Assembly (NCBI RefSeq): GCF_963921235.1
Contig: NC_086109.1
Span: 11,594,001 to 11,658,000 of the forward strand
Direction: 5' to 3'
Source of the DNA: Mobula hypostoma
Lineage: Eukaryota
Length of the DNA stretch: 64,000 nt
The notes below the pieces were generated by a model. It did not search any database. It worked only from the letters and a program-made list of their open reading frames with translations, and had not been told where the DNA came from. This document shows positions 36,401 to 63,900 of the stretch, one piece after another. Numbering within the stretch: position 1 is the stretch's first letter; the number at the start of each line of letters is the position of its first letter. Both the position numbers and the translations under genes were made by a program.

Positions 36401-37661
36401 CAGTGTGGCTTTATTCAGGGCTCTGTGTGGATACTGGCAGCTCGAGAACATCTTCACACTGTACTTCATCCAGTCTCTGAAACGTAACATCATTCAATTC
36501 TCTTTCCAGTCACTGGTAACGTGGGCAGTGGACAGCACACTCCCCATTGTGTAGTGTAAGGAGCCGGTGTGGAGATGTGTGATCAGATCAATCACCAGTT
36601 ACCATCGAGGAATTCAGTGACCTGATCTTCAGAGACTGGGTAAAGCCCACCGTGCAGATGTGCTCAAGCTACCAGGGCCCGCTGTGTTGCAGTTTATTGC
36701 GGTGAGCAGAAGATTTTCAGCAGAAGGGAGACATCGGCACAAATTCTGCAAATATAAAACCAAGAAGAGCTTGTAGTGCTTCCTGATTTCAGAAGAACAT
36801 CTGTTTCCAAAAGGTTGGGTTGCACATATTTTTATTAGAGTGTCCTATAATTCAACGTTTTCCTGTGCAGTGTGTAGAGAGTGTCATAGAGACATAGAGT
36901 CATTGAACACTACAGTATGGAAAAAGCCCTTCAGCCCATCTAGTCTATGTTGAACTATTAATCTGCCTAGACCCGTCAACCTTCACCCAGACTGTAGTCC
37001 TCCATGCCCATTCCATCCGTGTACTTATCCAAATTTCTTTTGAATATTGAAATGGAACCTGCATCCACCACTTCGCGAGCGGTCCGCTGTGGCTTTCTCA
37101 GGCTGACTGTACCCCACCCAGTGCCAGTGGTGTGTTCCGGGTAAAGCTGAGTGGGTGATGTTCTGGCCACTGAGTCAGAGAGTTGCCGGTTCCTCTCGCA
37201 CGCCAGGAGCCTGAGCACTGATGGAGTGTACATCTGAGGGAGCTTGGCACTGTTAGAGGACCCTCCTTGTTCAGGATGAGAATTATCCCCGACACCAAGG
37301 GCAAGTGGCAGGGTAGAGGGCAGTTATCGCTTTGCTATTCAGGAGAATTTGCTGTGTACACATTGGCTACGCACAACACCACACAGACTCTGATGGAGGT
37401 TACTGCAGGATCCTGCAGACTGAGTGTTTTACCATTAGCTGAACTACCGAGCGAGGGAACAACATCAGAATTTCCTGTTTTTCATCAGTTGCTTTGACAA
37501 AAACACTTTAGGCCACTTGTTAATAATTCTAAAGATCAGGTTACTTTATAAAACAATGATTTACCTGAAAAGATATCAACAGAGATGAGAGCCAGTAAAG
37601 CGATTGATTCCACAATCCTGGGCCGTTTCTGGTGAGTGAGTTCACCCTGCACCAACTCCAT
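6418..37661 (-). CDS. Gene A: single-V CD300/pIgR-like membrane receptor; join(37565-37661, 32873-33196, 8783-8888, 6418-6499), 202 aa
   Basis: Four AG/GT exons, each homologous to a gene B exon. They sum to 609 nt and read open from ATG to TGA. The direct V-to-TM join across a 24-kb intron is inferred from phase only. Confidence 0.7.
7840..8135 (-). mobile_element. tRNA-derived V-SINE-like element
   Basis: tRNA-like head (gtagcagttagcgtgatgctattacagc..ttcaattc), tgggtttcct central motif, LINE-like tail. Confidence 0.55.
8783..8888 (-). CDS. Gene A transmembrane exon ([36 protein letters not shown])
   Basis: Acceptor ttttcttggtccatcag|GA and donor AAG|gtatat; 106 nt, phase 1-2; paralog of 44295-44402. 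Confidence 0.85.
9850..10350 (+). mobile_element. Degraded Penelope pLTR fragment
   Basis: Pyrimidine-rich tract ending in the gattccagcatctgcagtc motif shared with other pLTR copies. Confidence 0.5.
10925..11450 (-). mobile_element. CR1 3' fragment
   Basis: RMLPG.E.LSY.ERL.RLGLY..E and RG...RV.GE.F.GN.RGN.FTQ.VV..WN.LP. Confidence 0.7.
11450..12845 (-). mobile_element. Rex1/Babar LINE RT fragment
   Basis: [26 protein letters not shown]...[18 protein letters not shown]. Confidence 0.82.
12850..13736 (+). mobile_element. PIF/Harbinger DNA transposon remnant (right end)
   Basis: Terminal gtagtgtggacgtagcc (reverse complement GGCTACGTCCACACTAC, a Harbinger-type TIR). Internal frameshifted [38 protein letters not shown] resembles the Myb/SANT-like ORF C-terminus. 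No left TIR found. Confidence 0.62.
13745..14390 (+). mobile_element. L1/Tx1-type LINE 3' end
   Basis: ORF2 C-terminus [21 protein letters not shown]...LSLEKIR...FEKRW, T-rich 3'UTR, A-rich tail. Confidence 0.75.
14440..15290 (+). mobile_element. Degraded CR1 RT fragment
   Basis: [18 protein letters not shown]. Confidence 0.7.
15290..17705 (+). mobile_element. Penelope-like element, 5'-truncated, with inverted 5' pLTR copy
   Basis: ORF 15863-17020 ([33 protein letters not shown] start [16 protein letters not shown]). 15290-15608 is the reverse complement of about 17340-17660. Confidence 0.9.
17567..17603 (+). ncRNA. Minimal hammerhead motif in Penelope pLTR (degenerate)
   Basis: TAGTC-CTGATGA-agggtcttggcct-GAAA-C-ATC-AACT. 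Confidence 0.5.
17725..18382 (+). repeat. Unclassified retroposon-like interspersed repeat
   Basis: CpG-rich body, aaatgacaataaaaga and (taatc)n tail; no coding similarity recognised. Confidence 0.4.
18600..19030 (+). mobile_element. Highly degraded CR1 ORF1 esterase/endonuclease remnant
   Basis: RVKDI...GEG.DA.I.IGTDD.G...E.L..DY..FG. Confidence 0.5.
19992..20708 (+). mobile_element. Solo LTR inserted in Gypsy pol
   Basis: TGTAAGGGG...GGCTACA with TSD CATG/CAGG; removing it restores SDIQVFVDM in pol. Confidence 0.8.
20810..25018 (-). mobile_element. Full-length CR1 LINE (ORF1 Cys-rich/coiled-coil + SGNH esterase; ORF2 endonuclease + RT), inactivated
   Basis: ORF1 [10 protein letters not shown]...IRELEQEL and [18 protein letters not shown]; ORF2 [45 protein letters not shown] few stops and frameshifts; possible TSD GAAAC (20805-09/25019-23). 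Confidence 0.95.
25150..25445 (+). mobile_element. L1/Tx1 3'UTR fragment
   Basis: Matches the T-rich UTR and tail of 14130-14390 (gctccggggttgt...gataaaaagattt). Confidence 0.55.
26560..28272 (+). mobile_element. CR1 LINE, 5'-truncated RT and 3' end
   Basis: ORFs 26909-27211, 27172-27585 and 27551-28000; ctattgtctattgactattg tail. Confidence 0.9.
28445..31445 (-). mobile_element. Near full-length Penelope-like element (RT + GIY-YIG, 3' pLTR with hammerhead)
   Basis: 636-aa ORF ([36 protein letters not shown]) and GIY-YIG ORF 28839-29165. Two lesions: a small deletion near 30945 and a 1-nt loss in a C-run near 29345. Confidence 0.93.
28510..28545 (-). ncRNA. Minimal hammerhead motif in Penelope pLTR
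   Basis: AGTC-CTGACGA-agggtctcggcct-GAAA-A-GTC-GACT (stem III C>A). Confidence 0.6.
32873..33196 (-). CDS. Gene A V-type Ig exon VA ([44 protein letters not shown]...[28 protein letters not shown])
   Basis: 324 nt, acag|GC to GAAG|gtatgt, open, CD300/pIgR Cys pattern. Confidence 0.93.
33520..34505 (+). mobile_element. Rex1/Babar LINE, 5'-truncated
   Basis: [34 protein letters not shown]; [16 protein letters not shown]; (agaatc)n tail. Confidence 0.85.
34505..35230 (-). mobile_element. Rex1/Babar LINE 3' fragment
   Basis: [35 protein letters not shown]...[21 protein letters not shown]. Confidence 0.82.
35520..36240 (+). mobile_element. Older Rex1/Babar fragment (probable continuation of 33480-33520)
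   Basis: [19 protein letters not shown]...[17 protein letters not shown]. Confidence 0.68.
37130..37375 (+). mobile_element. Degraded DeuSINE/SacSINE1-like element in gene A intron 1
   Basis: gagtcagagagttgccggttc head, tgagggagcttggcactgttagagg and ttgctgtgtacacattggct motifs, recognised from memory of the family. Confidence 0.45.
37565..37661 (-). CDS. Gene A exon 1, leader [33 protein letters not shown]
   Basis: 97 nt, strong donor TCAG|gtaaat, phase 1; same length as and homologous to the gene B leader. Confidence 0.82.
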
Positions 37662-37803
37662 ATTTCAGCAGTGTCAACCTGATCAGCTCCCTGTACTGTG
37701 TCTGACTTGGTCACTTCCTTATTCAGATGTCTCAAAGAGACTAGTTCCTCTTCTGGTAAAAAAAAAAGCACAAATGAACAGTGGTACAAGATTAGTTCTG
37801 TGC

Positions 37804-43152: not shown

Positions 43153-43291
43153 CTACTGGAGGAATACAACGGGTTCAGCTGTATCTGTGGTGTGAAAATA
43201 TGCTGTCGCCATTTTGGGTCGAGACCCTGCATTAGGACCGATCCATCTGTGTTGTGGGTTCTGTTTTTCAGGGCACGTCGCACCAGCCTGT
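43153..43291 (-). CDS. Gene B cytoplasmic/terminal exon (QAGATCPEKQNPQHRWIGPNAGSRPKMATAYFHTTDTAEPVVFLQ*)
   Basis: Acceptor ttttctgtttttctag|A in phase 2; shares EKQN with the gene A tail; TAG at 43153-43155. Confidence 0.75.
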
Positions 43292-46200
43292 CTAGAAAAA
43301 CAGAAAATCCAGTGTTAGGGATTGAGGGATGAGAAGGATCAGAATAGTTGATGATATTTCTCTTCAGCAAACACTAGTGATAATTTCCTTATGTGGGTGC
43401 TGGAACAATGCAATAAGGACTCTGCAGTGGTGGGTGTTGATGCTGTGGGGTTGGGCCATTCTGTATCTGCCTGGGGAAACTGAAAATATGTGGTGGTAGT
43501 GTAAAGTTGTCTGAGCTGGAGGTTGGGTGGAGCGATAAAGGATTGCGGATGGCTTACTTCCGTGAGTGAGGCTCCATTTAGGAGTTAAAGATTAGCTTTA
43601 TTTCACACAAGTACATCGAAACGTAAAAACGTACAGTGAAATACGCCATTTGTGTCATCGACCAACACAGTCTGAGGATGGTGCTGGGGGCAGCCCACAA
43701 GTGTCACTGCTCTTCTGACGCCAACACAGCATGTCCACACCTCAGTAACCCAAACACCTCCATCTTTGGAAAGGGGGAGGGACACCAATGTGGTAACAGG
43801 GAGAACTTAAATATCCTCACAGCAGCGGGAATTGAACCGCGATCGGTGATCACTGGTGCTGTAAGATGTCGAACTAAGCATTATGCTATCGTCTTTCCTT
43901 AGTCTATTGAGCTACGTGAGATACTTGGCCAGTGGTGAAACTAAATTGGGTATGAGTGGAGCTGTGTGAGCAGGATCCCTGGTGCATGTGAGGAGCATTT
44001 TACATCTCCAAATGCCTAGTAACCTCTGTGGCCCTGAAAAGCTAAGCATAACATGTGGAGTATGTTAACTTAACTATTATATTGTTTTAATGTGTATCCT
44101 TTAACTGTTACTTTCAGCCACTTTAAGACATTTAACCATTAATGGATCTCCACCGTCATTTCACTCTAATCGTTAGTTTGCAGTTACAGATGCTTATGTG
44201 ACACTCTGAATTAATTAGCAAGGACTAATTTGAAGCTTCCACTTTTAATTGTGATTCATACGACGTGGAAGTGATGGGGTTGGAAACAATATACCTTTGA
44301 AAAGCTGTCATGCAAAGTATCGAAACAGTGCAAAGAAGCAGAGCTCCGAGGAGTATCCAACGGGTCAGAGTCCAAACATGATGAATTATTGACACATAGT
44401 TCCTGATGAACCAAGAAAATATCATTAGTTACACACAGAGTAATCAGTAAGTGCCACTGAGAAATGCATTTTATCGAATACGTGTTATCAGCAAATGATA
44501 GATACATTTTATTAAAATGGTTCAAAAAGCCAGGTCACTGAAGAATATTAACTGGATCACAGCCAAATCATGGTGAATTTTCAACTCACAGACACTGATG
44601 GAGAAAGGAAACATAATTAACAACACGCAGAGAATTCTGTAACAGTTGGGAAACGCCTTGTCCTCACATTGCACATGAAATCATTCAACGTGATGCATGG
44701 AGTATCGAGCAGTCTGCTGGTTGAGTGCTGATTCTCCAACCTATGCCCATGCCTTGGAACTGTCGCACTGCCAGTGAAACTGAGTGAAATTAATGTTATC
44801 ATATCTATGTATATATTTCTATATACTTAATGCACACTAGACCTTGTTTCCCCATCACAGTGCATAGCGGAGATAAATATAGTCAGCAACTGTGACGCTG
44901 AGGCTGTGAGGTCGCTCCAGCTGCTCTGTTTCGCGTTTGCGAACCTTGCGGCGATTCGCCCTGGTAACATGATGAGCTGATACCTAGTCTTTGAGCCTAC
45001 TCTGGGGATTTGGATCTAAGGACTCAACTTGGTACAAAATGCTGCTGTTGTTCCTCGCTTCTTTTGTTTGCACGATTTGTTTTTTTTTTCTCTTTTTCTA
45101 TGCATTGAAGGTTGGTCTTTACTTTTTAAAATTGGATTCTTTTGGGTTTCTTGCTTTGTGGCTGCCAAGGCTATATAATCTATACATTCTTTGATAATAA
45201 GTGTACTTGGAATCTTTGAACTTTACCAGCGATCAGAGTGATTTCATGTTGAATACTGATGTATATTTACTGGGTTGTTTTCCCCTTCCTTGAACCTTTT
45301 GTGTGCAGACAATCCTGCTGGAGTAAAGTCCACCATGTTGGTGTTCTGCCAGAATTATTCCTGGATAGCCCCAGGAGAGGAAGATCAGGTTGCAGAGACT
45401 GTTCTTCAGGCATTTTCTTCTCAATGTGTTGAAAAGAGGGAATTTCTGCTGTGTACAATGAGGTGCAACTAAGGCAAAGAAAATGCTCATCATGAAATCA
45501 CTGTGATCTTTGGTTGGGTTGTTCACCAAGCCCGGAGGTTAGGTCGCAAAGGTTTCGTGTCCAGTCGAGGTGACAACATCAATACGCAATTTGGGTGTTT
45601 CTGCCGAGTGCTCGCAGAAGCACAAAACAAGAAAACAAGAGAATTCTTAAAAGTTTGGTTCTCAACAGAAGACTCTATTAACAAGCATATTGGACTAGAT
45701 GCAAATTACGAACCTGTGTCTGTGGGATCGGGGGCAAGGGAACACCCAAGGAACCACCGATCAGTGACTGCTAACCAGGGACATGGGCCAGCAAGCCAGT
45801 GGTGATCACTCAGCTATCTGTTTCGCTTGGACCTAGTGTAAACTAGTGGCCAGTGCGACAGCCTACCTATCAGAACTCTGAGTCAGACCAATACAAACGC
45901 AAGCATTCGGCAGAAACAGCACTCATTTGCACACTGATGATGTCATCTCGACTGCTGTTGTAACATTTGCGACCCAACCGCCAGGCTCAGTGAACAGCTC
46001 TACAAACAAGCAGCCAACCTGAGCTACCGTCTACTCTTTCCTTTCAAGTCACTGCGATCACTGGAAAAATTGCTGACTATATTCATCTTGAGCTGTCCTG
46101 AGAGTACTGCAACATTGAGGTAAAGCTGTGGAAGTCTGAGTTGGCCCATGAAATGGCTGATCTGATCTGAATCAATGAAGCAAAAGTCTCAGTGGATCCT

Positions 46201-49200
46201 TCTAACCTGGTGGGAATTCCGTTCTGAGATGAGCTGGTCCACGTGGTTGCATTAGTAGTTTCCATGGTGCTTGCCTCATTTTCTGGAGGGTAAAGTAGAC
46301 AAAATATCTGAATATTGAAAGTTTGAAAGCAGCTTCTATCCCATCTCCATGAAGTGTGGGCAGTGCCCCACTTAGGTCACTTGCTCAGTGCCTGAAGGTC
46401 CTTGGTTCAAATCTTACTGCAGATGGTCATTGTGGTTCCCTCCTGACAAGGCCATCTTCATACAGGCTAAGCCCTATGAGCTCTCAAACATTCCCCAACT
46501 TCTATCATGAGCCTCAGTCTGGTTAGACATCGCCAGTGGAAGCACCGTTGTGTGACTTGCAGCTGTGTCTGACCTAGGAAGGGTGGGGCAATCAAGGGGT
46601 TGTGGCTGATAGGACAATGTGCAAGAGACCTGGCAATCATTCCTTTCAATTTGGAGAGTTTATTTCTTGTGAGAGTCCATGCTTGCGTTGTCTTCAGTTA
46701 TTAGAGAAAAAGGGTGACAATATATTCCTGATTTTTGGGACGCTCCCAGAGGTTCCTGAATTTGGGGCACTCTCAGGGAGATTCTTTGGCCATTCTTTGT
46801 CCCTGGTCATAGAATGTTGCTGAGAGTGTCCCAAATTCAGGAAAATCTCTGGTGCAGCAAGGACCACATCTAACCTCTTCACCTAAGGATGTCCACTGCT
46901 GTCATTACTTTGCCCCTGTGGCTGGAGTCTTGGAGCTGGTCACCAATCTAGATCCCACTGACACAGCATTCCTGTATCGGACTGAGGAGTGGGGTGAAGG
47001 TAGAGGGGCTCTGAGCCCAATCTGTCCACTGCTGGTACAGGGAACAGGCCTGACATAGAAACATAGAAAACCTACAGCACAATACAGGGTTGTGCCGAAC
47101 ATGTCCCTACCTTAGAAATTACTAGACTTACCTATAGCCCTCTATTTTACTAAGCTCCATGTACCTATCTAAAAGTCTCTTAAAAGACCCTATTGTATCT
47201 ACCTCCCCCACAGTTGCCGGCGGCCCATTCCACGCACTCACCACTGAGAAAAAAAACTTACCCCTGACATCTCCTCCGTACCTACTTCCAAGCACCTTAA
47301 AACTGTGTCCTCTCGTGCTAGACATTTCAGCTTTGGGAAAAAGCCTCTAACTATCCACAGGATCTATGCCTCTCATCATCTTATACACCTCTATCAGGTC
47401 ACCTCTCATCCTCCATTGCTCCAAGGAAAAAAGACCAAGTTCATTCAACCTATTCTGATAAGGCATGCTCCCCAGTCCAGGCAACATCCTTGTAAATCTC
47501 CTCTGCACACTTTCTATGGCTTCCACGTCCTTCCTGTAGTGAGGCAACCAGAACTGAGCACAGTACTCCAAGTAGGGTCTGACCAGGGTCCTATATAGCT
47601 GCAATATTACCTCTCAGCTCCCAAATTCAATTCCACGATTGATGAATGCCAATACACCGTACGTGTTCTTAACCACAGAGACAACCTGCACAGCTGCTTT
47701 GAGGGCCCTATGGACTTAGACCCCAAGATCCCTCTGATCCTCCACACTGCCAAGAGTCTTACCATTAATACTATATTCTGCCATCATATTTGACTTGCCA
47801 AAATGAACCACCTCACACTTATCTGGGTTGAACTCCATCTGCCACTTCTCAGCCCAGTTTTGCATCCTATCAATGTCCTGCTGTAAACTCTGACAGCCCT
47901 CCACACTATCCGCAACACACCCAACCTTTGTGTCATCAGCAGACTTACTAACCCATCCCTCTACTTCCTCATCCAGGTTATTTATAAAAATCATGAAAAG
48001 TAAGGGTCCTAGAACAGATCCTTGAGGCACTCCACTGGTGACTGACCTCCATGCAGAATATGATCCATCTACAACTATTCTTTGCCTTCTGTGGGCAAGC
48101 CAGTTCTGGATCCACAAAGCAATGTCCCCTTGGATCCCATGCCTCCTTACTTTCTTAAGCCTGGCATGGGGTACCTTATCAAGTGCCTTGCTGAAATCCA
48201 TATACACTACATCTACTGCTCTTTCTTCATCAATGTGTTTAGTCACATCCTAAAAAAATTCAATTAGACTCGTAAGGCATGACCTGCCCTTGACAAAGCC
48301 ATGATGACTACTCCTAATCGTATTATACCTCTCAAAATGTTCATAAATCCTGCCTCTCAGGATCTTCTCCATCAACTTACCAACCACTGAGGTAAGACTC
48401 ACTGGACTATAATTTCCTGGGCTATCTCTACTCCCTTCCTTGAATAAAGGAACAACATCTGCAACCCTCCAATCCTCCGGAACCTCTCCCGTCCCCATTG
48501 ATGATGCAAAGATCATTGCCAGAGGCTCAGCAATCTCCTCCCTCTCCTCCCACAGTAGCCTGGGGTACATCTTATTCGGTCCCAGCGACTTATCCAACTT
48601 GATGCTTTCCAAAAGCTCCAGCACATCCTCTTTCTTAATATCTACATGCTCAAGCTTTTCAGTCTGCTGCAAGTCATCACTACAATCATCAAGATCCTTT
48701 TCACAGTGAATACTGAAGTAAAGTATTCATTAAGTTCCTCTGCTATTTCCTCCTGTTCCATCCACACTTTCCCTCTGTCATAATTGATAGGTCCTATTTT
48801 TTTCATGTCTTATCCTCTTGCTTTTCACATACTTGTAGGATGCCTTGGAGTTTTCCTTAATCCTGCCCACCAAGGCCTTCTCATGGCCCCTTCTGGCTCT
48901 CCTAATTTCCTTCTTAAGCTTCTTCCTATTAGCCTCATAATCTTCTAGATTTCTAACATTACCTAGTTCTCTGAACCTTTTGTAAGCTTTTCTTTTCTTC
49001 TTGACTAGATTTATTACAGCCTTTGTACACCACAGTTCCTGTACCCTACCATAACCTCCCTGTCTCATTGGAATGTACCTATGCAGAACTCCACACAAAT
49101 ATCCCCTGAGTATTTCCCACATTTCTTCCATACATTTCCCTGAGAACATCTGTTTCCAATTTATGCCTCCAATTTCCTGCCTGATAGCCTCATAATTCCC

Positions 49201-52200
49201 CTTACTCCAACTAAATGCTTTTCTAATTTGTCTGTTCCTATCTCTCTCCAATGCTACTGTAAAGGAGACAGAATTATGATCACTATCTCCAAGATGCCCT
49301 CCCACTGAGAGATCTGACACCTGACCAGGTTCATTTCCCCATACCAAATCAAGTACAGCCTCTCCTCTTGTAGGCTTATCTACATATTGTGTCAAGAAAC
49401 CTTCCTGAACACACCTAACAAACTCCACCCCATCTAAACCCCTTGCTCTAGGAAGGTGCCAATGGATATTTGGGAAATTAAAATCTCCCATCGCAACAAC
49501 TGTTATTATTACACCTTTCCAGAATCTGTTTCCCTATCTGCTCCTCGATATCCCTGTTACTATTGGGCGGCCTATAAAAAAACACCCAGTAAAGTTATTG
49601 ACCCCTTCCTTTTCCTAACCTCCACGCACAGAGACTCCGTACACAATCCCTCCATGGCGTGCACCTATTTGCAGCCGTGACACTATCTCTGATCAACAGT
49701 GCCACACCCACACCTCTTTTGCCTCCCTCCCTGTCCTTTCTGAAACATCTAAGACCCGGCACTTGAAGTAACCATTCCTGTCTCTGAGCCATCCAAGTCT
49801 CTAATGACCTCCAGCTCCCACTGCTTGGAAACTGGAGATCTAAGAGGGGAGTGCGGAGGTGAAACGGGGGTCGGGTGAAGTAGCTCAAAGAAAGAGGCTG
49901 AGAGAAAGGAGGGGTTGATCAGTTCACAGAAGAGGAATAAAGGGCAATAAGAAAAGGACATTTGAAGGTGCTAATAGGGTATCTACCTCTACCATTAAAT
50001 CTAGAGATGCTGACTGACCTATTGAGAATTTCCCATGATGTGTACCTTCTGTGTTGGCTCAGTGCAAAGACCAGACAGACATTTTTGCTCGGGGGAAATG
50101 ATTGGTAGAATTGGCAGAACTGGATCAAGGTGAAGCAATGGAATCACCACTGTGTGTGAGTGGTGAACGTGAGCTTGGTGGGCAGGGGAACAGGGGTTGG
50201 GCTGGTTCCTCTCCTCCTGTTTCAGTGAGACTCAGCACAAGGTCTGATCTTAGAACCGCAGTCTTTTGGGGAAAATGTCTTATCAACAGCTGAAAAGCTG
50301 GCCGCCGGGATCTTCCTGTCAGGTTTATCAGCTCATTCATACTCCCCCCAGGAAGGTGGAGCTCTTCTTTGTCCTTATCGGCTGCACCCCTGCAAATGAG
50401 TTCCCATCTCTTTAATGGTACTGAGTCACAGTCAGAGCTGAGGGAGGGAATTCCTAAGCTGCGATTTTCTAATATGGAAGCTTGACGAGAAATTGTAAAC
50501 GTACCTTCAGAAACTTCCAGTGAAATGATAAACCTTTTTCTCGGTACGTATATTACCCTCTCCATTATACACTGATACACCCCTTCATCACTCTTCATTA
50601 GATTGTCCACGGTTACCGAAAGAATCCCTCGTATTTTGTTGTCAGTCATTGATACTCGTCCTCTTCGTGGCTGGTCAGTCGAAACCACAGTGGAACAACC
50701 CACGTGAGGATCACCTCTACACCATTTCTTCACGTAGTCCTTATACTTCGGATCATACTGGCATTCCACAGTGACTGACTGTCTCACTGCTCCTCTAACC
50801 TTCTCAGGTCCAGTTAATGCACCTGAGCCTGTTGGCACATGAATAATGGAAGTTACCCACACGTCATCAGCACAAGGTGCATTTAGCAACATACACTCAT
50901 CTTATTAACTGCTTAGAGAATCTCGCAGAGATCATGTTCCTCTTGAATATTTTATCCCGGGTGTTAATCCTCATTTCACCGAGTTGTTCCTCAAATTACA
51001 GTAAAAGCTATAATGGGTGGTCAGGCGTTCACAACTTGCGTGTCTGTTGTTTCTTGTTGTGAGCAGGCTGTGAATCCTGGAGAAATGATCCCTGCTGTAG
51101 TTCAGTGAGGGAGCCGCCACCTCCTCAGCGGCAACATGAGATGGCAGATAGGTTCTGGCCTGGTCACTGTTGTAATGAGTTTACTGGGGGATCATCCAGT
51201 GAGGATCTCTGGGTGAACCTGAGAAATAAGAAGGGGTTGATCATTCTACTCCAGGCGGGCTAATCATCAATGGGTATAAAAGGAACCTTCAAAGTGGTTG
51301 CAGAAAGTTTTAAAAAAAAAATTAGTTTTCTTTCATAGTAGGGGATATCATGATTCCTTATAAACAGTGGGACTGCCTTAGTGCTTAGGGCTTTAATGTG
51401 ACAGAATTTAAGTGTATTCAGGAAAATTCTCAAGCAATATATCGAATGCTTTACTCTGAAGATGGCAAAGTTTGATCTACTCTTTGGACCACGATCAATT
51501 GGGGTATGGCATATTCTGTGGTATTAAATAGGAACTTGGCAAAGTTGACTGTGACACAGAAATGGCTTGCTGGTGCGAAGGGAAGCGTGAGGGTTTATAG
51601 TTGTTTATTGGGTTAGAGGTCTGTGACCAGCATTGTGCCTCAGGTGCTGGTGCGAGGCGGATTGTAATTTGTCACGATATCAGGAAAAGGACATCTGCAG
51701 GTGATTATTTATACAGCAATATAAAAGATTTTTCTTTCATAATTGATAAAAATAAAGCAACCAGTCAGTCTTCCAGTGTATTAAAAAAATTCTCACTGAG
51801 ATATTGTTAGGACTGCCATCAATTCCAGCCTTTCTAACTCAGTTCCTAGTGATCACTAATGCTTATTTTCTCACCTGCTGGTAACTTCAGACATTTATTC
51901 TCAGTTCTACTCCACCTCCTGACTCAAATCTTGGTACCTGTCCCAATCTTTAACCAGTTCTTTACCACACAAGCTTTACTCTCTGCTCTCCCTACCCTAT
52001 CAACAACCTTTCTTTGTCTTCTGTCCATCCACGCTACTCTTCCCCTGCCATTTTCTTCTTGGGACACATCGCCCCTACTGGTGTAGAGGCCATGGATAGA
52101 AGCTCAGCAGAGTCCACTGTCCTGGGCCAGTCTTTCAAATTTTCCCAGGTGTAACCCATCTCCATGGTGTATCTTTCCTCTCCCATGGATGAGATCTTTG

Positions 52201-55200
52201 GAGCTTCTGTTGGTGTTTCTGTAGCTCTGGGTTTTCACGAGATTTTTTTTTCTTACTTTAATTTATTTAGTGATATAGTGCAGAGTAGGCCCTTCCAGAA
52301 ACTCACCTATTTAACCCTAGGCTAATCTCAGGACAATTTACAATTAGCTTACTAACTGGTACGTCTTTGGATTGTGGGAGGAAACCGGAGCATCAGGAGG
52401 AAAGTCACAGGAAGAAAGTACAAACTTTCTTACTGAGAACACTGGAATTGAACGCCAAACTCCAATGCCCCATGCTTAAGTAGTGTTGAGCTAACCACCA
52501 TGCTACTGTGGGTTGCTAGCCTCATGCTGAACTCTTCTCCTTTTGCATCTGGGCTTGGGACTGTCCATTTGTGGAGTCTTCCCTCTACCTGCGACTGAAC
52601 AAATTTTTGACCTCAAATGCTTCCATTACCAATGAAAGAGTATCTAGCTGAATCATTAGCTCTATTCTCCTTGCCATTGATTTTAGTTAACCTGCTGTAC
52701 GTATCCAGGGATGAGGCATGAGTTGTGGTTAGTGAAAGGGAGGAAATTCACAGGATGAGATTTTCAAACTTGGGAATGTGATGTCAAATTGTATACATAC
52801 CTTCAAGAGATGTCTGCACATCTATTGATTTTATTTTCTTTTCTATTAGTAATTTCAGCTCCTAGTCTTCTATTTACCACCCATCTGTCTGCTTCTCTGA
52901 ATTGTAACTTCTGCATTTCCTCAAAATATTGGCCGTTCAGATTGACCTGAAACATTAAGGTTGTTTTCTCCCCACGGATGGTGCCTGACCTGCTGAGTAT
53001 TTCCCACATGATCCACTTTATTTTTTACTTTCTGTGTGGCTCAGTCCAAAGACCAGATCACCCTTCCTATCTGGGAATTTATTGCTGGAGCTGGACTTAG
53101 TTGAAGCAATGTGCGAGAGGTGAGGGTGAGCTTGGTAGGCAAGAGGACAGGTGTGAAGCTTGTTCCTCTCCTCCTGCTCCAGTGAGAGTCGGCTTAATGT
53201 CTGATCTCAGAGCCACTGTCTTTGTGGAAGTGACCCATCAGCAGGAGAACAACTGGCCATTGAGACCTTCCCGTTGGTTCAGGGTTTCACAGTCCATTCA
53301 CATCCTTCCAGGAGGTTGGGGCTCTTAGTGTGTCCCCATAGGCTGAGATCCTCAGTAATTGCGGACTCAGTCCTTTGATGCCCAGGGATGAAGCACTGAA
53401 TTGTGGTCAGTGCAAGGAGGGAATTCCTAAGCTACGATTTTTAAACTTGGGAATGAAAGACAAATTATTAACATACCTTCAGACACCTCGAGTGAAATGG
53501 TAAACCTTTCATTTGGTGTCAACATTGCCCTTTCTATCATACACTGGTACAGCCCTTCATCACTCTTCCTTAGATTGTCCATGGTTACTGAAAGTATCCC
53601 TCGTGTTTTGTAATCGGTCATTGTTATTCGTTCACTTCGTGGCTGGTCAGTTGAAACCACAGCGGAACAACCAATGTGTGAATCACCTCTGCACCATTTC
53701 TTCACGTAGTCCCTGTATCTCAGATCATACCAACATTCCACAGTGACTGATTGTCCCACTGCTCCTCTGACCTTTTCAGGTCCAGTTAGTGCACCTGAGC
53801 CTGTGGGTACATGAATAGTAAAAGATTACCCATGCATCATCAGCACAAAGTGCATTTAGCAAGATAAACTCATCATGTCTACTAGAACATGGAACATGGA
53901 ACAAAGAACAGCACCGCAGAGGAAAAGGCCATTTGGCCCATTGTGTTGTGCCAAGCCAGCTAAAAACCAAATCTAATATACCCAAACACTCATCCATCTA
54001 CCTACAACATGTCCATATCTCCGCATTGTCCTGCCTATATAAAAGTCTCTGAAAAGCTTCTGATATATTTGCCTCTACCACCATATCAGGCAGCACATTC
54101 CAGGCATCCATAACTCTGAGTAAAGAAACTTACTCCTCACACCACCCTTGAGCCTACTGTTCTGAGAGCTTCATGGTTGTGCAGAGATCATGTTCCACTT
54201 TAATATTTTATCCTTGGTGTTAATCCTCATTTCTTTGAGATTGTTTGTCAATGTTCAGTGAATGCGGAACCGCTCACCCTAATATGTCTAAGCTTTGTAT
54301 TTGGTGTTTCTTGTTTGGGTTGCGAATTCTGCTGAAATGATAACTGCAGTGGTTCAGCGAGGGAGGCATGATCTTGCGGAGCAACCAGAGATAGCAATAA
54401 ATTCTGGCCTTCCCACTGATGCCCAGGTTTAAATGAATTTACTGGGGTTCCAGTGAAGCTTTATGGATGAAACTGGGGTGTATGGGGTGTCAGGGAGGGG
54501 TAGCACCTCTGGTGGGGGAACATGTCGCGTCCATTTCAGGGCGGTTAGTCCACCTTTGGTCCCCACCTGGTACTCAGCTCTCACCTGTGGCTCCCCGTAG
54601 CTGTTTGCATGCGACAGCGGCCACACCCCGGGCAACAGCTTTGACAAGCCGGCTAAACCAGGTGAGGGTAGCCGACGGGTCTCAAACCCTCGGTGAGATA
54701 GGGAGTTGTCTATCCCAGCATGTGAAGACAGACTCTGGTGGATTGAGTGGACGAGACCAATGGAAGGTCCAATAGTCAAGAAGGCAGTCTCTGCAAGCGT
54801 CGTGAAATGTGTAGAGCAGGACAAGACACAGAAGACGTCCTGGTCATCCACTGCGCCTAGTCCCATCTCCAGCCATCTTGACTCTGTCTTGCCACTGGAT
54901 CCAGATGGGAATTGGGAAGAGAGAGTGAGGCTGACACTGAGCAACTCTCCCTCACTTAAATCCAACTCACGCGCTAGTCTCGACACCATCATAATGGTGT
55001 CAAGGTCCTCATCGATGTCGACAATGGACGAACAATGATTGAAACTGAGAAATGAGGATGGGTTAACATACAAAACACCGGAGGAACTCAGCAGGTCAGG
55101 CAGCATCTATGGGAATGAATGAACAGTCAACATTTCAGCCTGAAACCCTACTTCAGAACTGTCATGTAAGGGGGAAGACACTAGAATAAAAAGATGTGGG

Positions 55201-58200
55201 GAGGAGAAGGAGATAAGCCAGAAGGTGATAGGTGAAGCCAAGTGTGTGGGAAAGCTAAAGGGCTGGAGAAGAAGTAATCTGATAGGAGAGTAGAAGAAAC
55301 CATGGGATAAAAGGAAGGAGGGGCAGCAGGTGATAAGCAAGTGAGGAGAAGAGATAAGAGGTCAGAGTAGAGAATAGAGGAAGAGGGAGGAAGGTGGCAA
55401 AAAAATGATCAGAAACAGAAATTGATGATCATACCATTTGGTTGGAGGCTACCTGGATGGAATGAGGTGTTGCTCCTCCATCCTGGGAGTGGCCTCATCA
55501 TGGCAAAAGGGTAAGCCAAGGACCGACATGTCAAAATGGGGATAGGAATTAAGATGGTTGCCTTCTAGGAAATTCAGCTTTTGATGGATGTGCTTGACAA
55601 AGCAGCACTCCAAGTTACACCTGGAAGACTGGGGCTCTGAATGGAGTTACGGGAGGAGGTGAATGAACAGGTATAGCATTTTTGTCACTTGCACAGATAT
55701 GTGCCAGGAGATAGATTAATGGGGAAGGGATTTACAGACAAGGAAATCATAAAGGGAGCAATTACTGGAGAAGCTGAGAGTGAGGGATGATTATAAGACC
55801 ATAAGATTATGATGTGTTTGTTGGTAGAATCCTGTTAAAATGGCAGAAATTGGGGAGAATGGTATCTTGGAATCAAGGGGTGAGCGTAGATGTCCAGGAA
55901 GTAAAAGTGATTCAGGTGGGAGCAGCATCAATGGTGGAGAAAGAGAAAGCCTGTTCTTTGAAGGAGGAGGACATATCTGATGTTCTCAAAATGAAAGCTT
56001 CATCATGGGAACAGATGTGGGAGAGACGAAGGAACTAAGAAAAGGGAAAAGCATTTTGATAGGCAATATGATGGGAAGAGGAATAGCCAAGATAGCTATG
56101 GGATTCAGTAGGCTGACCCAAAGAAAATACAATGGAGTCATGGTGTGCGGACACGAGCTCAGTATTGTAGGAGCAGGCAAAGGCCATAGGCTGACCTGGA
56201 CAGTCAGGTTTGTGAATCTTAGACAGGAGGTTGAAATGAGGAGTCTGGGGTAAGGGACCTACGAGCTTGGTGGTGGTGGATAAGATTTACCAAAGTTGAT
56301 GAGGTTAGTGATGGTATCAGAGACAATTTTCTGATCACTTTATTCAGATTGTACCATAAGCTGTCTCACCACACCTTGTACTATTGTAAATTAACTCCCC
56401 CAGCTCCTGTATTCCATACCTTAACTGATGAAGGCCAATATACCAAACTTCTTCACCATCCTGTCTGCCTGTGTCGCTGCTTTCAGCAAATTGTGTACTT
56501 TTACTCTTAGGTTTGACCATACATGTATTGATTTTCTTTTCTATTCTGTTGGTAATTTGAGCTCTTGGTTTTCTCTCCAACCACCCCACCCTTCTCCTTC
56601 TCTGCATTGTAACTCTTGCATTTCCTCTAAGTATAGGCAGTTCAGATTGATCTAGAACATTAAGATTGTTTTCTGCTCAGAGATGCTGCCTGGCCTGCTG
56701 AGTATTTCCCCCATTATTCACTTTATTTTGTATTTTCTGTGTGGCTCAGTCCAAAGACCAGATCACCCTTCCTATCTGGGAATTTATTGCTAGAATTGGC
56801 AGAGCTGGATAGAGTTGAAGCAATGTAATCACAACAATGTGTGAGTGGTGATGGTGAGCTTTGATGGATAGGGGAACAGATGTGTAGCTCGCCCTTCCCC
56901 TTCTGTTCCAGTAAGAGTCAGTACAGTGTCTGATATTGAAGCAACTGTCTTCAGGGAAGTGACCCATCAACAGCAGAACAGTCGGCCATTGGGACCTTTC
57001 CATCAGTTTAGTGTTTGACAGTCCATTCATACCTTCCCAGGAGGTTGGGGCTGTTAGTGTGTCCCAATAGGCTGGGATCCTCACTAAATAAGGCTCCGAT
57101 CCTTGATCCCCTGGGATGAGGCACTGAGTCATGAATAGTGTGAGGGAGTGAATTTGGGATTTTCAAATTTTGGAACAAAAGGGAAATTGTTAACGTACCT
57201 TCAGAAACCTCCAGTGAAATGGTAAACCTTTTATTCGGTACATATATTAACCTCTCCATTACACACTGGTACAGCCCTTCATCACTCTTCCTTAGATTGT
57301 TCACAGTTATCAAAAGAATCCTTTGTGTTTTGTTATCAGTCATCAATATTCGTCTTCTTTGTGGCTGGTCAGTTGAAACCACTGTGGAACAACCAATGGA
57401 AAGATCACCTTTACACCACTTTTTCATGTAGTCCATGTATATCCGATCATACCGACATTCCACAGTGACTGATTGCCCCACTACTCCTCTAATCTTCTCA
57501 GGTCCAGTTAATGCACCAGAGCCTGTGGGTACATTAATAATGAAAGATTACCCACACATCATCAGCACAAAGTATACTGAGCAATGTAAACCAATCATGC
57601 ATACTGTTCAAAGAGTTTCCTGATTTTGAAGAGATCATGTCCCACTTTAATAGTTTATCTTTGATGTTAATCCTCATTTCATTGAGATTGTTCCTCAACG
57701 TTTAGTTAAAGCAGAATGGCTCACCCTAATGATTCTGAACTCTGTGTCTGTTGTTTCTCATTTTGAATGTGTTGTGAATTCTGTGGAAATGATTGCTGCA
57801 GTGGTTCAGTGAGGGAGTGATCACCTTCCTAGGGGCAACTAGGGATTGCAATAAATTCTGGCCATGCCACTGATGATCACATTGTTATAAAGTTTCTGGG
57901 GCCCCAGTTGGCCTCATTGGTGATAGCAGGAAATAAGTAGGGGTTAACACATACAACTTGACAGGTCAGTCAGTGTCTATGGAAATGAACAGAGTCAACG
58001 TTTCAGATCAAGACCCTTCGTCAGGACTGGAAATGAAGGGGGAAGACAACAGAATAAAATGATGGGGGGAGGGGAAGAAGATAAACTAGAAGGTGATAGG
58101 TGAAGCCAGATATGTGGGAAAGCTGAAGAACTGGAGAAGGAGGAATCTGATAGCAGAAGACAATGGATCACAGGAGAAAGGGAAGAAGGAGGAACACGAG

Positions 58201-59736
58201 GAGATGGTGATAGGCAGGTGAGGAGAAGAGATAACAGGCCAGAGTGGAGAATAGAAGAAAGGGGATGAGGGAGGGCTGGAACATGGACTGTTCCACGTGA
58301 CTAACGAAAAGACAGACATAAATGATGTCCATGTGGTTGCCTATGGCTACTCAGTGAGCTTGGAGAAAATGGGAGGAGCTGAAGAAGAAATTGGTGAGGG
58401 TGGGTACCAGTTCTGCTGGATGGAGGAGGGTGGTGATGGAGTGGAAATGATGGGGTCTTTTTTTGAGGAAGATGCAGAGAACTTTAAGGATCTCCTCTAC
58501 AGCAGTTTTTCATGTAGTCCTTGTATCATACCGATCATACTGACAATCAACAGTGCAACACAAGCTACTGTTCAAAGAGTTTCATGATTTTGTAGATATG
58601 GTGTTCCACATTAGTATTTTATCCCTGGTGATAGCCCTAATATCTCTGATTTTTTTTTTTCCTCACGTCATAGTGAAAGCAGAATCACCCAGCCTGATGT
58701 TTCCAACCTGTCCCTATGTTGTTCAAGTTGTGAACAGATTGTGAACATTGGAGAAATAATCCTTGCTGTGGTTCAAAGTGGACGGCACCAGCTCCTCCAC
58801 AGGGGCATCCAGGATGGGTAACAAATAACAGCAATGCCACCGATGCCCTGACCACAACGATAACATAAATTTAAGACTAAAAGGCCACCATAAATAGGTG
58901 CAGAATTAGGCCATCTAGCCTGCACTGCCATTTGATCATGGCTGAGTTATTTTCCCTCTCGATTCTATTCTCCAGCTTTTTCCCCGTAGCCTTTGACACT
59001 CTTACAAATTAAGAACCTGTCGACCTCCACCAAATCCTTTCATAGAGTTGGGCCTAAAGTTACTCACAACTTAATGGCTGCATATTATTTATTTATCTAG
59101 ACCATCATAATTAAAGGACAAAACAGTTTGCTGAGGTTCCTCATTATTCCGCTGTCCCCAGCTGCTACTTCAAGTTTGCCCATTTGTAATTGGAGCTGTT
59201 TCCTCTCCTGTAATTGAATATCCAAGCTGGAAATTTTACAGAGGGACAGTTTCCATGGATGATTTATCCCTGACATATTCCCCAATAAAATTCTGTCAAT
59301 CTACATTGGGAGGATCGCTAAATGCAGAAATATTGGTCCGACAGTGGAGATATTTTAGTTGTTGCTCTGTCTGTGTTGAAACTACTGCCCACATGGCAGA
59401 GAGTCCAGGCTATTTCTGGGATCATCTTGCTGTGCACCCATTGCACCTCTTGACCAGAATCCTGGATAATTCACGACAGCAAATGGCATTATTCTCAACG
59501 GTTCATCTTCAGCTCTCCCACCCAGTGCATGATCCGACATCAGCAGAACTTCCTGCATCTGTCAGTGTTATTCATTAGAAAACTGTACAGTACTTGTTAA
59601 TATCTATAAACATCATATATTTTAGATATAATGCTTTACCTGATACAAAACCAGTGGAGATGAGAACCAACAGAGCGATAGCTCCCATTGTCCTGGGGTG
59701 TCTTTGGTGCATGAATTCACCCAACACCAGCTCCAT
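43153..59736 (-). CDS. Gene B: CD300/pIgR-like (CMRF35-like) type I membrane receptor with 3 V-type Ig domains; join(59640-59736, 57199-57522, 53477-53800, 50505-50828, 46207-46282, 44295-44402, 43153-43291), 463 aa
   Basis: All seven exons have AG/GT boundaries with compatible phases (1,1,1,1,2,2). They sum to 1392 nt, an open frame from ATG to TAG. The V domains show the CD300/pIgR pattern GP..V.G..G.SV.V.C.Y...K.WC.G.....C...D.G.Y.C. Confidence 0.85.
43580..43900 (-). mobile_element. tRNA-derived SINE
   Basis: Same family as 38880-39150 (gcagcgggaattgaaccgc head, caacacagtctgaggatg tail). Confidence 0.55.
44295..44402 (-). CDS. Gene B transmembrane exon ([36 protein letters not shown])
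   Basis: Acceptor ttttcttggttcatcag|G and donor AAG|gtatat; 108 nt, phase 2-2. Hydrophobic segment with an Arg; paralogous to 8783-8888. Confidence 0.88.
45516..46000 (+). mobile_element. Miniature Penelope-like element (second family) with inverted pLTR arms
   Basis: 45516-45612 is an imperfect reverse complement of 45902-46000. The centre encodes AQNKKTREFLKVWFSTEDSINKHIGLDANYEP (GIY-YIG C-terminus-like); ctgatgatgtcatctcgac is a hammerhead-like core. Confidence 0.65.
46207..46282 (-). CDS. Gene B Ser/Thr-rich stalk exon (E-NEASTMETTNATTWTSSSQNGIPT-R)
   Basis: Acceptor ctactttaccctccag|AA and donor AG|gttaga; 76 nt, phase 1-2, which bridges V (phase 1) to TM (phase 2). Mucin-like composition with an NAT sequon. 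Confidence 0.75.
47053..49800 (-). mobile_element. CR1 LINE, ORF2 (endonuclease + RT) with frameshifts, 5'-truncated
   Basis: ORFs 48778-49491, 48250-48672, 47716-48246 and 47347-47604; (ctatgttt)n tail at 47053-47070. Confidence 0.92.
50505..50828 (-). CDS. Gene B V-type Ig exon VB3 ([44 protein letters not shown]...DEGVYQCIMERVIYVPRKRFIISLEVSE)
   Basis: 324 nt, acag|GC to GAAG|gtacgt, open, same Cys pattern. Confidence 0.93.
52250..52505 (-). mobile_element. V-SINE inserted in an RTE-like fragment (52080-52565)
   Basis: tttcctcctgatgctccggtttcctcccacaatccaaagacg central V-domain on the minus strand. Confidence 0.65.
53477..53800 (-). CDS. Gene B V-type Ig exon VB2 ([44 protein letters not shown]...[28 protein letters not shown])
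   Basis: 324 nt, acag|GC to GAAG|gtatgt, open, same Cys pattern. Confidence 0.93.
54476..55039 (+). mobile_element. Short non-autonomous retroposon (probably RTE-related) carrying the HDV-like ribozyme at its 5' end
   Basis: 564-bp insertion into the V-flanking module, bounded by the direct repeat TGAAACTG (54468-54475 / 55040-55047); no coding capacity. RTE affinity is inferred. Confidence 0.6.
54484..54668 (+). ncRNA. HDV-like (delta-like) self-cleaving ribozyme candidate
   Basis: P1 GGGGTGT(54484-90)/ACACCCC(54623-29); P2 CTCTCACCTG/CAGGTGAGGG; P3 GGC/GCC; L3 starting TCCCCG; J1/4 GGGCAAC; P4 GCTT-TGAC-AAGC; J4/2 GGCTAA with candidate catalytic C54653. Element order matches the HDV nested double pseudoknot. 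Confidence 0.7.
55060..56340 (-). mobile_element. Degraded Penelope-like element
   Basis: pLTR/hammerhead remnant at 55080-55160; tgaaagcttcatcatgggaacagatg parallels the 29595-29630 RT segment. Confidence 0.6.
57199..57522 (-). CDS. Gene B V-type Ig exon VB1 ([44 protein letters not shown]...[28 protein letters not shown])
   Basis: 324 nt, acag|GC to GAAG|gtacgt, four Cys in the CD300/pIgR arrangement, no stops. Confidence 0.93.
57950..58480 (-). mobile_element. Penelope pLTR fragment
   Basis: Purine-rich pLTR body with the hammerhead at 57993-58028. Confidence 0.55.
57993..58028 (-). ncRNA. Minimal type I hammerhead ribozyme motif (Penelope pLTR)
   Basis: AGTC-CTGACGA-agggtcttgatct-GAAA-C-GTT-GACT: intact core, stem I agtc/gact, palindromic minimal stem III. 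Confidence 0.6.
58501..58555 (-). pseudogene. Decayed fourth V exon remnant of gene B
   Basis: Minus strand reads ACT GTT GAT TGT CAG TAT GAT CGG..TAC AAG GAC TAC ATG AAA (TVDCQYDR/YKDYMK, frameshifted). It is followed by the same upstream-intron module (58560-58850) that flanks every intact V exon. Confidence 0.75.
59640..59736 (-). CDS. Gene B exon 1, leader/signal peptide MELVLGEFMHQRHPRTMGAIALLVLISTGFVS-G
   Basis: 97 nt from ATG to the donor CAG|gtaaag, phase 1. It has a hydrophobic h-region and is homologous to the 37565-37661 exon. Confidence 0.85.
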
Positions 59737-60914: not shown

Positions 60915-63900
60915 AGAACATAGAACATAGAATAGTACAGCACAGTACAGGCCCTTCGGCCCACAATGTTGTGCCGACCCTCAAACCCTGCCTCCCATAT
61001 AAGCCCCCACCTTAGATTCCTCCATATACCTGTCTAGTAGTCTCTTAAACTTCACTAGTGTATCTGCCTCCACCACTGACTCAGACAGTGCATTCCACGC
61101 ACCAACCACTCCCTGAGTAAAAAAAACCTTCCTCTAATATCCCCCTTGAACTTCCTGCCCCTTACCTTAAAGCCATGTCCTCTTGTATTGAGCAGTGGTG
61201 CCCTGGGAAAGAGGTGCTGGCTATCCACTCTATCTATTCCTCTTATTATCTTGTACACCTCTATCATGTCTCCTCTCATCCTCCTTCTCTCTAAAGAGTA
61301 AAGCCCTAGCTCCCTTAATCTCTGATCATATTGCATACTTTCTAAACCAGGCAGCATCCTGGTAAATCTCCTCTGTACCCTTTCCAATGCTTCCACATCT
61401 TTCCTATAGTGAGGTGACCAGAACTGGACACAATACTCCAAGTGTGGCCTAACCAGAGTTTTATAGAGCTGCATCATTACATCGCGACTCTTAAACTCTA
61501 TCCCTCGACTTATGAAAGCTAACACCCCATAAGCTTTCTTATCTACCCTATCCACCTGTGAGGCAACTTTCAGGGATCTGTGGACATGTACCCCGAGATC
61601 CCTCTGCTCCTCCACACTACCAAGTATCCTGCCATTTACTTTGTACTCAGCCTTGGAGTTTGTCCTTCCAAAGTGTACCACCTCACACTTCTCCGGGTTG
61701 AATTCCATCTGCCACTTCTCAGCCCACTTCTGCATCCTATCAATGTCTCTCTGCAATCTTTGACAATCCTCTATACTATCTACAACACCACCAACCTTTG
61801 TGTCGTCTGCAAACTTGCCAACCCACCCTTCTACCCCCACATCCAGGTCGTTAATAAAAATCACGAAAAGTAGAGGTCCCACAACAGATCCTTGTGGGAC
61901 ACCACTAGTCACAATCCTCCAATCTGAATGTACTCCCTCCACCACCACCCTCTGCCTTCTGCAGGCAAGCCAATTCTGAATCCACCTGGCCAAAATTCCC
62001 TGAATCCCATGCTTTCTAACTTTCTGAATAAGCCTACCGTGTGGAACCTTGTCAAATGCCTTACTAAAATCCATATAGATCACATCCACTGCACTACCCT
62101 CATCTATATGCCTGGTCACCTCCTCAAAGAACTCTATCAGGCTTGTTAGACACGATCTGCCCTTCACAAAGCCATGCTGACTGTCCCTGATCAGACCATG
62201 ATTCTCTGAATGCCTATAGATCCTATCTCTAAGAATCTTTTCCAACAGCTTTCCCACCACAGACGTAAGGCTCATTGGTCTATAACTACCCGGACTATCC
62301 CTACTACCTTTTTTGAACAAGGGAACAACATTCGCCTCCCTCCAATCCTCCGGTACCATTCCCGTGGACAACGAGGACATAAAGATCCTAGCCAGAGGCT
62401 CAGCAATCTCTTCTCTCGCCTCGTGGAGCAGCCTGGGGAATATTCCGTCAGACCCCGGGGACTTATCTGTCCTAATGTATTTTAACAACTCCAACACCTC
62501 CTCTCCCTTAATATCAGCGTGCTCCAGAACATCAACCTCACTCATATTGTCCTCACCATCATCAAGTTCCCTCTCATTGGTGAATACCGAAGAGAAGTAT
62601 TCATTGAGGACCTCGCTCACTTCCACAGCCTCCAGGCACATCTTCCCACCTTTATCTCTAATTGGTCCTACCTTCACACCTGTCATCCTTTTTTTTTCTT
62701 CACATAATTGAAGAATGCCTTGGGGTTTTCATTTACCCTACTCGCCAAGGCCTTCTCATGCCCCCTTCTTGCTCTTCTCAGCCCCTTCTGAAGCTCCTTT
62801 CTTGCTTTCCTACATTCCTCAATAGACCCAGCTGATCCTTGCTTCCTAAACCTCATGTATGCTGCCTTCTTCCTCCTGACTAGATTTTCCACCTCACTTG
62901 TCACCCATGGTTCCTTCACCCTACCATTCTTTATCTTCCTCACCGGGACAAATTTATCCCTTACATCCCGCAAGAGATCTCTAAACATCGACCACATGTC
63001 CATAGTACATTTCCCTGCAAAAACATCATCCCAATTCACACCCGCAAGTTCTAACCTTATAGCCTCATAATTTGCCTTTCCCCAATTAAAAATTTTCCTG
63101 TCCTCTTTGATTCTATCCTTTTCCATGATAATTATAAGGCCAGGGAGCGGTGGTCACTGTCCCCCAGATGCTCACCCACTGAGAGATCTGTGACCTGACC
63201 CGGTTCATTACCTGGTACTAGATCTAGTATGGCATTCCCCCTGGTCGGCCTGTCCACATACTGTGAAAGGAATCCGTCCTGGACACACTTAACAAATTCT
63301 GCCCCATCTAAACCCTTGGAACTAATCAGGTGCCAATCAATATTAGGGAAGTTAAAGTCACCCATGATAACAACCCTGTTATTTTTGTACCTTTCTAAAA
63401 TCTGCCTCCCAATCTGCTCCTCTATCTCTGCTGCTACCAGGGGTTCTATAGAATACCCCCAGTAGAGTAACTGCTCCCTTCCTGTTCCTGACTTCCACCC
63501 ATATTGACTCAAAAGCGGATCCTGCTACATTACCCACCCTTTCTGTAGCTGTAATAGTATCCCTGACCAGTAATGCCACCCCTCGTCCCCTTTTTCCGCC
63601 CTCTCTATCCCTTTTAAAGCACTGAAATACAGGAATATTGAGAATCCATTCCTGCCCTGGTGCCAGCCAAGTCTCTGTAATGGCCACTACATCATAATTC
63701 CCTGTATGTATCCAAGCTCTCAGTTCATCACCTTTGTTCCTGATGCTTCTTGCATTGAGATACACACATTTCAGCCCTTCTACCTTACTGTCTTTACACC
63801 ATTTATTCTGCTTCTCTTTCCTCAAAGCCTCTCTGTATGTTAGATCTGGCTTTACTCCATGCACTTCTTTCACTGCTCTAGCGCTCTGGGTCCCATCCCC

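Follow-up and report, generated by a model that had tools for sequence, protein, structure and literature searches.

A tandem array of V-set exons behind a single leader in Mobula hypostoma: a probable serial three-V receptor of the CD300/pIgR-like type

Within a 64,000-nucleotide (nt) stretch of the Mobula hypostoma genome (contig NC_086109.1, positions 11,594,001 to 11,658,000; hereafter the window, whose coordinates are used throughout), the minus strand of a region rich in transposable elements (TEs) carries a gene, here called gene B, in which one leader exon is followed by a tandem array of V-set exons and one set of stalk, transmembrane (TM) and tail exons. Following the gene from exon anatomy to product, we favor, with a probability of about 0.7, a default product that is an ordinary receptor with three V domains in series. 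The best reading is that gene B encodes a type I membrane, activating-type, multi-V CD300/pIgR-like receptor, a known kind of gene that goes by the label "polymeric immunoglobulin receptor-like" in existing batoid annotation. A sequence-only reading of the same DNA had emphasized possible splice diversification of the V exons and had named a plain three-domain pIgR-like protein with SE-GSGALTGP linkers as the simpler alternative; it is this simpler alternative that we find better supported, and it fits all of the evidence.

The leader exon of gene B lies at 59640-59736 (minus strand, as for every exon and module described below). It encodes ...MGAIALLVLISTGFVS, and its donor, CAG/gtaaag, is in phase 1. 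It has an ATG at 59736 and a second, in-frame ATG at 59688. Downstream of it, the V-set exons VB1 (57199-57522), VB2 (53477-53800) and VB3 (50505-50828) are each 324 nt long and phase 1-1, and motif and tblastn mapping places an ...ACAG acceptor before and a GTA(C/T)GT donor after every one of them. All three are recognized as Pfam V-set domains, with E-values from 5.5e-11 to 1.6e-14; their translations start with (G)SGALTGPEK and end with ISLEVSE, and every copy has Cys residues at positions 22, 36, 44 and 86, which is the pIgR/CD300 pattern of a B-F disulfide plus a C-C' disulfide. The introns are 2.6-3.4 kb long with ordinary GT-AG sites. Moreover, VB1-VB3 have almost the same acceptors and donors as the sole V exon of a neighboring gene, gene A, and this V exon must be obligatory because it is the only one that gene A has.

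Each V exon sits within a duplicated module. The module around VB1 spans 56679-57875 (taking in about 350 nt before the exon and about 520 nt after it), that around VB2 occupies 52818-53883 plus 54152-54454, its upstream part being split by an insertion of about 270 nt (53884-54151), and that around VB3 covers 50003-51172. By self-comparison and alignment, the modules measure 1.07-1.2 kb and share 74-79% identity. A decayed V module (psiV) is located in the leader-V1 intron at 58487-58800, where the upstream intron block (58566-58800) has been kept and the exon survives as a remnant of about 70 nt (approximately 58487-58560), with its acceptor gone and the 3' two thirds missing. The structural observation made in the sequence-only reading is thus correct in every particular: gene B has a single leader exon, the sole other leader homologue in the window being that of gene A; three intact 324-nt, phase 1-1 V exons, mapped with their AG/GT sites, accompany a decayed fourth; the V exons begin with the motif given as GSGA-LTGP; and the duplicated intronic modules are close to the proposed size of about 1.2 kb.

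The constant part of the gene was placed with batoid relatives as tblastn guides, together with direct reading of the DNA. It consists of a 76-nt stalk exon rich in Ser, Thr and Asn (46207-46282; phase 1 in, phase 2 out; donor CAG/gttaga), a 108-nt, phase 2-2 TM exon with an Arg in its hydrophobic segment (44295-44402; ..WTLTRWILLGALLL..), and a putative terminal coding exon (43153-43291) recognized by homology to the tail exon of gene A and by a common ...tttttctag acceptor. This last exon would provide a tail of about 45 amino acids that stops at about 43155 and is free of an immunoreceptor tyrosine-based inhibitory motif (ITIM). Only one stalk, TM and tail set lies downstream of the array. 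The expectation that any subset of V exons would splice in frame onto it was borne out, as all eight possible subsets are open and yield 139, 247, 355 or 463 amino acids, the last being the full conceptual product of gene B. Skipping of the stalk exon, by comparison, produces an immediate premature stop.

The stalk of gene B is probably shorter than that of its relatives, at 25 versus about 43 amino acids. The stalk reading frame remains open past the GT at 46206 (46158-46206), in a segment homologous to the longer stalk of the relatives up to their donor. At the position of that donor, gene B has no GT and reads CAGATCAG and then atcagcc.

With respect to maintenance of the array, VB1-VB3 share 81-85% nucleotide identity, as compared with 60-80% for the flanking intron. 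Their pairwise dN/dS values are 0.39-0.53, with the differences concentrated in loops resembling complementarity-determining regions, and these substitution patterns indicate that the three exons are under purifying selection. The Mobula birostris protein model P0002, named "polymeric immunoglobulin receptor-like", joins leader, V1, V2 and V3 in series. Its domain d1 shares 90% identity with VB1, d2 shares 94% with VB2 and d3 shares 96% with VB3, values far above those for the other copies, and P0002 is the one-to-one orthologue of gene B. The V triplet therefore predates the split between M. hypostoma and M. birostris, and each copy has been kept since. We infer that all three V exons are normally included in the mRNA.

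We propose that the ectodomain grew by tandem duplication of a unit of about 1.15 kb, comprising one V exon and adjoining intron, which would have given rise to four V copies, of which one decayed and three were kept. The GSGALTGP start common to the V exons would have been inherited when the leader-proximal exon was duplicated, and the repeated SE-GSGA-LTGP junctions would act as short linkers between the V domains. The default mRNA would run leader, V1, V2, V3, stalk, TM and tail and encode a 463-amino-acid protein, each V domain of which would carry the pair of disulfides that characterizes pIgR/CD300 V domains. For signaling and ligand type, our proposals draw on known CD300, TREM and similar receptors. 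Because gene B combines a TM Arg with a tail free of an ITIM, as in such receptors, its protein probably signals through an adaptor, presumably one with an acidic TM segment, and gene B would then be the activating partner of the inhibitory paralogues seen in relatives. Occasional skipping of the symmetric phase 1-1 V exons could give rise to in-frame forms with one or two V domains; such in-frame skippability is a general property of Ig-domain exons and no dedicated device for diversification.

Several points weigh against a serial three-V product. The tail exon of gene B was assigned by homology only, and the stalk donor used by the relatives has been lost, the substitute gttaga being sub-optimal. 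A search with VB2 of short open reading frame (ORF) fragments from read assemblies gave no match, and a search with P0002 of protein collections retrieved neither a gene B model from M. hypostoma nor a nearby RNA-derived match. The gene models of the relatives are themselves predictions, and at least one of them, Leucoraja X1, is a chimera that arose by read-through between two genes. Finally, Narcine isoforms at NCBI skip V1 or V3, such that constitutive V inclusion is not guaranteed.

In terms of family membership, a full HMMER scan with VB2 returned 1961 relatives at E <= 0.001, the best of which are multi-V ray and skate proteins. The NCBI models in question, from Mobula birostris, M. hypostoma, Hemitrygon akajei, Leucoraja erinacea, Amblyraja radiata and Narcine bancroftii, go under the name "polymeric immunoglobulin receptor-like" or "CMRF35-like molecule". 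Of the solved structures, pIgR matches best (4e-33), with CD300f/CLM-1 at 1.8e-17 and further matches to CD300a, CLM-6, NKp44, TLT-1 and TREM2 (CD300f, CD300a and CLM-6 span 1.8e-17 to 4.6e-10). An NCBIfam scan gave noise only, this library being oriented toward prokaryotes, an Rfam scan of the whole window gave no family at gathering score, and we found no literature report on elasmobranch CD300/pIgR-like genes. The relatives come in two forms, one with an Arg-containing TM and a short tail (P0003, P0007) and the other with an uncharged TM and an ITIM-like tail (P0005, P0202). By these features, the batoid relatives are a paired activating/inhibitory family, with gene B of the predicted activating type. 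We prefer the designation "multi-V CD300/pIgR-like receptor" because gene B is pIgR-like in sequence yet departs from pIgR in its tail and TM segment.

The batoid models used for comparison (all NCBI Gnomon) were P0002, P0004, Hemitrygon akajei P0003 and P0005, Leucoraja erinacea XP_055510916/17 and Narcine bancroftii XP_069798184-190. They share with gene B the V family (at 53-94% identity), the leader-V array-stalk-TM layout, a TM with Arg or an ITIM-type tail, and the SE-GS..TGP junctions. Their single leader precedes two to five tandem V exons (315-324 nt, phase 1-1), the skate, stingray and electric-ray relatives included, and the multi-V models of these three repeat SE-GS..ITGP linkers. 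They differ from gene B in that V number varies by lineage and that several are of the inhibitory type, whereas gene B is activating. In a tree of V domains, the domains cluster by batoid order; the V arrays would therefore have expanded or been homogenized independently, as opposed to being ancient, position-specific domains. For Hemitrygon, models with two and with three V domains exist. In Leucoraja, X2 (L001:45711-58416) has its leader at 45711 and then three V exons 1.14 kb apart, followed by stalk, TM and tail, whereas the four-V X1 (XP_055510916) has a different leader, 35 kb upstream, that belongs to an upstream gene (L001:10001-17532). Specifically, X1 takes its leader and first V exon from this upstream 2-V gene and its other three V exons from the gene that follows, whose own leader it skips. 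We had considered the X1/X2 pair as a candidate case of cassette skipping and set it aside, as mapping shows X1 to be, in all probability, a read-through or chimeric model of two genes. The Narcine locus (L002) has one leader (10001-10099) and then four V exons. All four are included in isoform X1, X4 lacks V1 and X3 lacks V3; X2 uses a donor inside V1, and X5 is without the TM. The X6 isoform has a first exon (L002:16370-16457) that starts with "MN"; its donor lies 82 nt before V2, within a conserved intron block described below. A GT at the position of the X6 donor (about 57605 in the window) is also present before VB1 and VB3; it is not found at the gene A V exon or at the skate exons.

These isoforms bear on a different reading of gene B, in which the V exons are regulated cassettes whose combinations vary by tissue or cell state, with 1-, 2- and 3-V receptors made at meaningful levels. 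We regard this as unlikely, though worth keeping in view. All eight V subsets are in frame, and the structural preconditions for the proposal that the locus could make 1-, 2- or 3-domain receptors therefore hold, whereas the V-exon choice of the Dscam or protocadherin type attached to that proposal does not. Of the Narcine isoforms, X3 omits V3, X4 omits V1 and X6 begins a short way before V2, and they are the sole evidence of cassette skipping within the family of gene B. This evidence is weak, because over their first 75 nt the Narcine V exons are identical at 69-72 of 75 positions, such that junction reads may have been mis-assigned. Regulated cassette exons are known to be marked by conserved intron on their flanks, and the roughly 235 nt before each V exon match skate and electric ray at a level close to that of the exons: this upstream block (57523-57760, 53801-53883 plus 54152-54300, and 50829-51068 in gene B; 33197-33436 in gene A) is 70-78% identical to the same position in Leucoraja and Narcine, with the exons at 68-74%. 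Its core of about 85 nt (57618-57707, 54171-54260, 50923-51003 and 33292-33381) shows 80-86% identity among copies, as high as the exons, the gene A copy included. The block is not specific to arrays, however, since single-V gene A carries it as well, and cross-order intron identity of this kind may reflect nothing other than slow neutral change in elasmobranchs; it may thus be a splicing or transcriptional control element, or merely slowly changing neutral sequence. The V splice sites of gene B are, furthermore, as good as those of the obligatory V exon of gene A. That the tandem V exons of batoids at large are regulated cassettes, each with a conserved control block of about 235 nt upstream, is in our estimation doubtful. 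Cassette skipping as such is plausible for this family, and skipping of Ig-domain exons is documented for pIgR in rabbit, hare and bovine, in which mRNAs skip the exon for domains 2-3 (PMC9716071). We consider it quite improbable that gene B is a decaying or unexpressed copy whose exon array is without current function. In favor of that reading are the one V copy already in decay, the loss of the ancestral stalk donor and the failure to find an annotated gene B protein from M. hypostoma in the databases searched; set against this, the three V exons keep open frames, four Cys residues and canonical splice sites, their dN/dS of 0.39-0.53 and the 90-96% protein identity to the M. birostris orthologues speak for constraint, and the 463-amino-acid model is complete and open.

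The likeness to Dscam or the clustered protocadherins drawn in the sequence-only reading gained no support from any feature tested, and the features that would enforce exclusivity are absent. Use of exactly one V exon per mRNA, be it through Dscam-like exclusive splicing or protocadherin-like promoter choice, shares with gene B only the general layout of same-length, same-phase exons arrayed between constant 5' and 3' exons, and we judge it highly improbable. All multi-exon combinations keep the frame, which leaves no barrier from reading frame or nonsense-mediated decay (NMD); the introns are of kilobase size with GT-AG sites, so neither a steric block nor U2/U12 incompatibility applies; each V exon has an acceptor and lacks an ATG or leader to itself; and predicted models in four relatives join V exons in series. 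Docking/selector pairing was sought with short-word complements and an inverted-repeat finder, which gave only TE-derived pairs and 11-13-nt matches at chance level; no complementary element was found that is common to all modules and a leader-proximal site, or that links the V modules to a stalk-proximal one. The TE-derived inverted repeats contain the motif ACTCAGCAGGTCAGGCAGCATCT and pair 55086-55124 with 52960-52998, 56678-56703 and 50000-50020, with a further copy at 57963-57983; they are 21-39 nt long, 79-92% complementary, and flank VB2 as well as the whole V array. The ACTCAGCAGGTCAGGCAGCATCT repeats could, as a weak effect, favor looping-out of exons. It is just as hard to credit that hidden leaders or promoters make VB1, VB2 and VB3 the V exons of separate genes. 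The claim that no leader lies between the V exons withstood three kinds of search. By homology, no leader was detected between 50505 and 59560, the only other one in the window being that of gene A (37515-37668); a de novo scan, in which candidates needed an ATG, a hydrophobic core and a phase-1 GT donor, picked up the two real leaders but no leader-like mini-exon in the V1-V2 or V2-V3 introns; and no conserved in-frame ATG occurs just upstream of the V acceptors, VB3 alone having one by chance. In favor of separate genes, the apparent 4-V isoform X1 of Leucoraja in fact reads through from an upstream gene that has its own leader, and at several V exons in all three species short hydrophobic ORFs end at a GT 29-33 nt before the acceptor. 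We rejected these ORFs as fossil leaders, in that their frame varies by copy and species, the implied intron would be only 29-33 nt, and their alignment to true leaders is no better than that of shuffled sequences (z from -0.7 to 1.7, that is, below 2). The array is, in addition, followed by a single stalk, TM and tail set.

Gene A, the neighbor of gene B, belongs to the same family and is also on the minus strand. Its leader lies at 37565-37661 (the homology match to the gene B leader spans 37515-37668) and its sole V exon, which is intact, at 32873-33196. This exon is identical to domain 1 of the M. hypostoma model XP_062922428 (P0004), and through the same model an Arg-containing TM exon was located at about 8780-8889, followed by a short tail exon at about 6430-6510. 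On the pattern of P0004, the V exon seems to be spliced in phase 1 straight to the TM exon, about 24 kb downstream. XP_062922428 otherwise resembles a fusion of two genes. Repetitive elements are also prominent around gene B: the V3-stalk intron holds, at 47155-49802 (minus strand), a fragment of a long interspersed nuclear element (LINE) that has ORFs for endonuclease and reverse transcriptase and is no part of the gene product. Copies of the same LINE family, likewise with endonuclease and reverse-transcriptase ORFs, occur at 61020-63676 and also at 21113-22266, with about 71% identity between copies, such that one copy sits just upstream of gene B and another fills much of the V3-stalk intron.

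If the serial three-V reading is true, gene B adds one more lineage-specific, exon-duplicated member to the CD300/pIgR-like receptors, relatives of which have already been annotated automatically in several rays and skates. Its usefulness would then be mainly as a clean, fully mapped example, with seven exons and their phases as well as one decayed copy, that illustrates recurrent duplication of V exons in cartilaginous fish, a group once reported to be without pIgR-type genes (PMC4016189). If V-exon choice were regulated, on the other hand, gene B would represent germline, splicing-based variation of the binding surface of an innate receptor in an early-branching jawed vertebrate, and one gene would give rise to receptors differing in the number and combination of their V domains.

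Among known systems, Dscam1 and the clustered protocadherins likewise have arrays of similar exons beside constant exons. Dscam1, however, needs a mechanism that admits one exon per cluster (frame and NMD, steric block or docking-selector pairing), and each of these was tested in gene B and found absent. The variable exons of the clustered protocadherins and of UGT1A are first exons, with their own promoter and start codon and a 5' splice donor only; unlike these, the V exons of gene B each have an AG acceptor and no conserved upstream ATG or leader. A closer likeness is to the mammalian CD300/CMRF35-like molecules (CLM-1/CD300f, CD300a), which share with gene B a V-set domain with the extra C-C' disulfide and a stalk. 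In mammals, the CD300 gene clusters encode activating members with a charged TM, paired with inhibitory members that have an ITIM, and gene B and gene A both have an Arg-containing TM. The ligands of CD300 are lipids. The mammalian CD300 ectodomain is a single V domain, whereas that of gene B would have three. In this last respect pIgR is nearer: it is the best solved-structure match and has several V-type domains in series, mostly with one exon per domain, and the three V domains of gene B fall within its range of two to five. Zebrafish pIgR-like (PIGRL) copies, in teleosts, have two or three Ig domains, and cartilaginous fish yielded no PIGR homologue in an earlier survey (both PMC4016189). 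Nonetheless, pIgR, which binds and carries polymeric Ig with J chain, has an uncharged TM and a long cytoplasmic tail with sorting and transcytosis signals, whereas gene B has an Arg in its TM and a putative tail of about 45 amino acids; tblastn with relatives found no pIgR-like tail exon for gene B. There is no evidence of orthology between gene B and pIgR, the NCBI name being an automatic label of similarity, and gene B is better described, as above, as a multi-V CD300/pIgR-like receptor.

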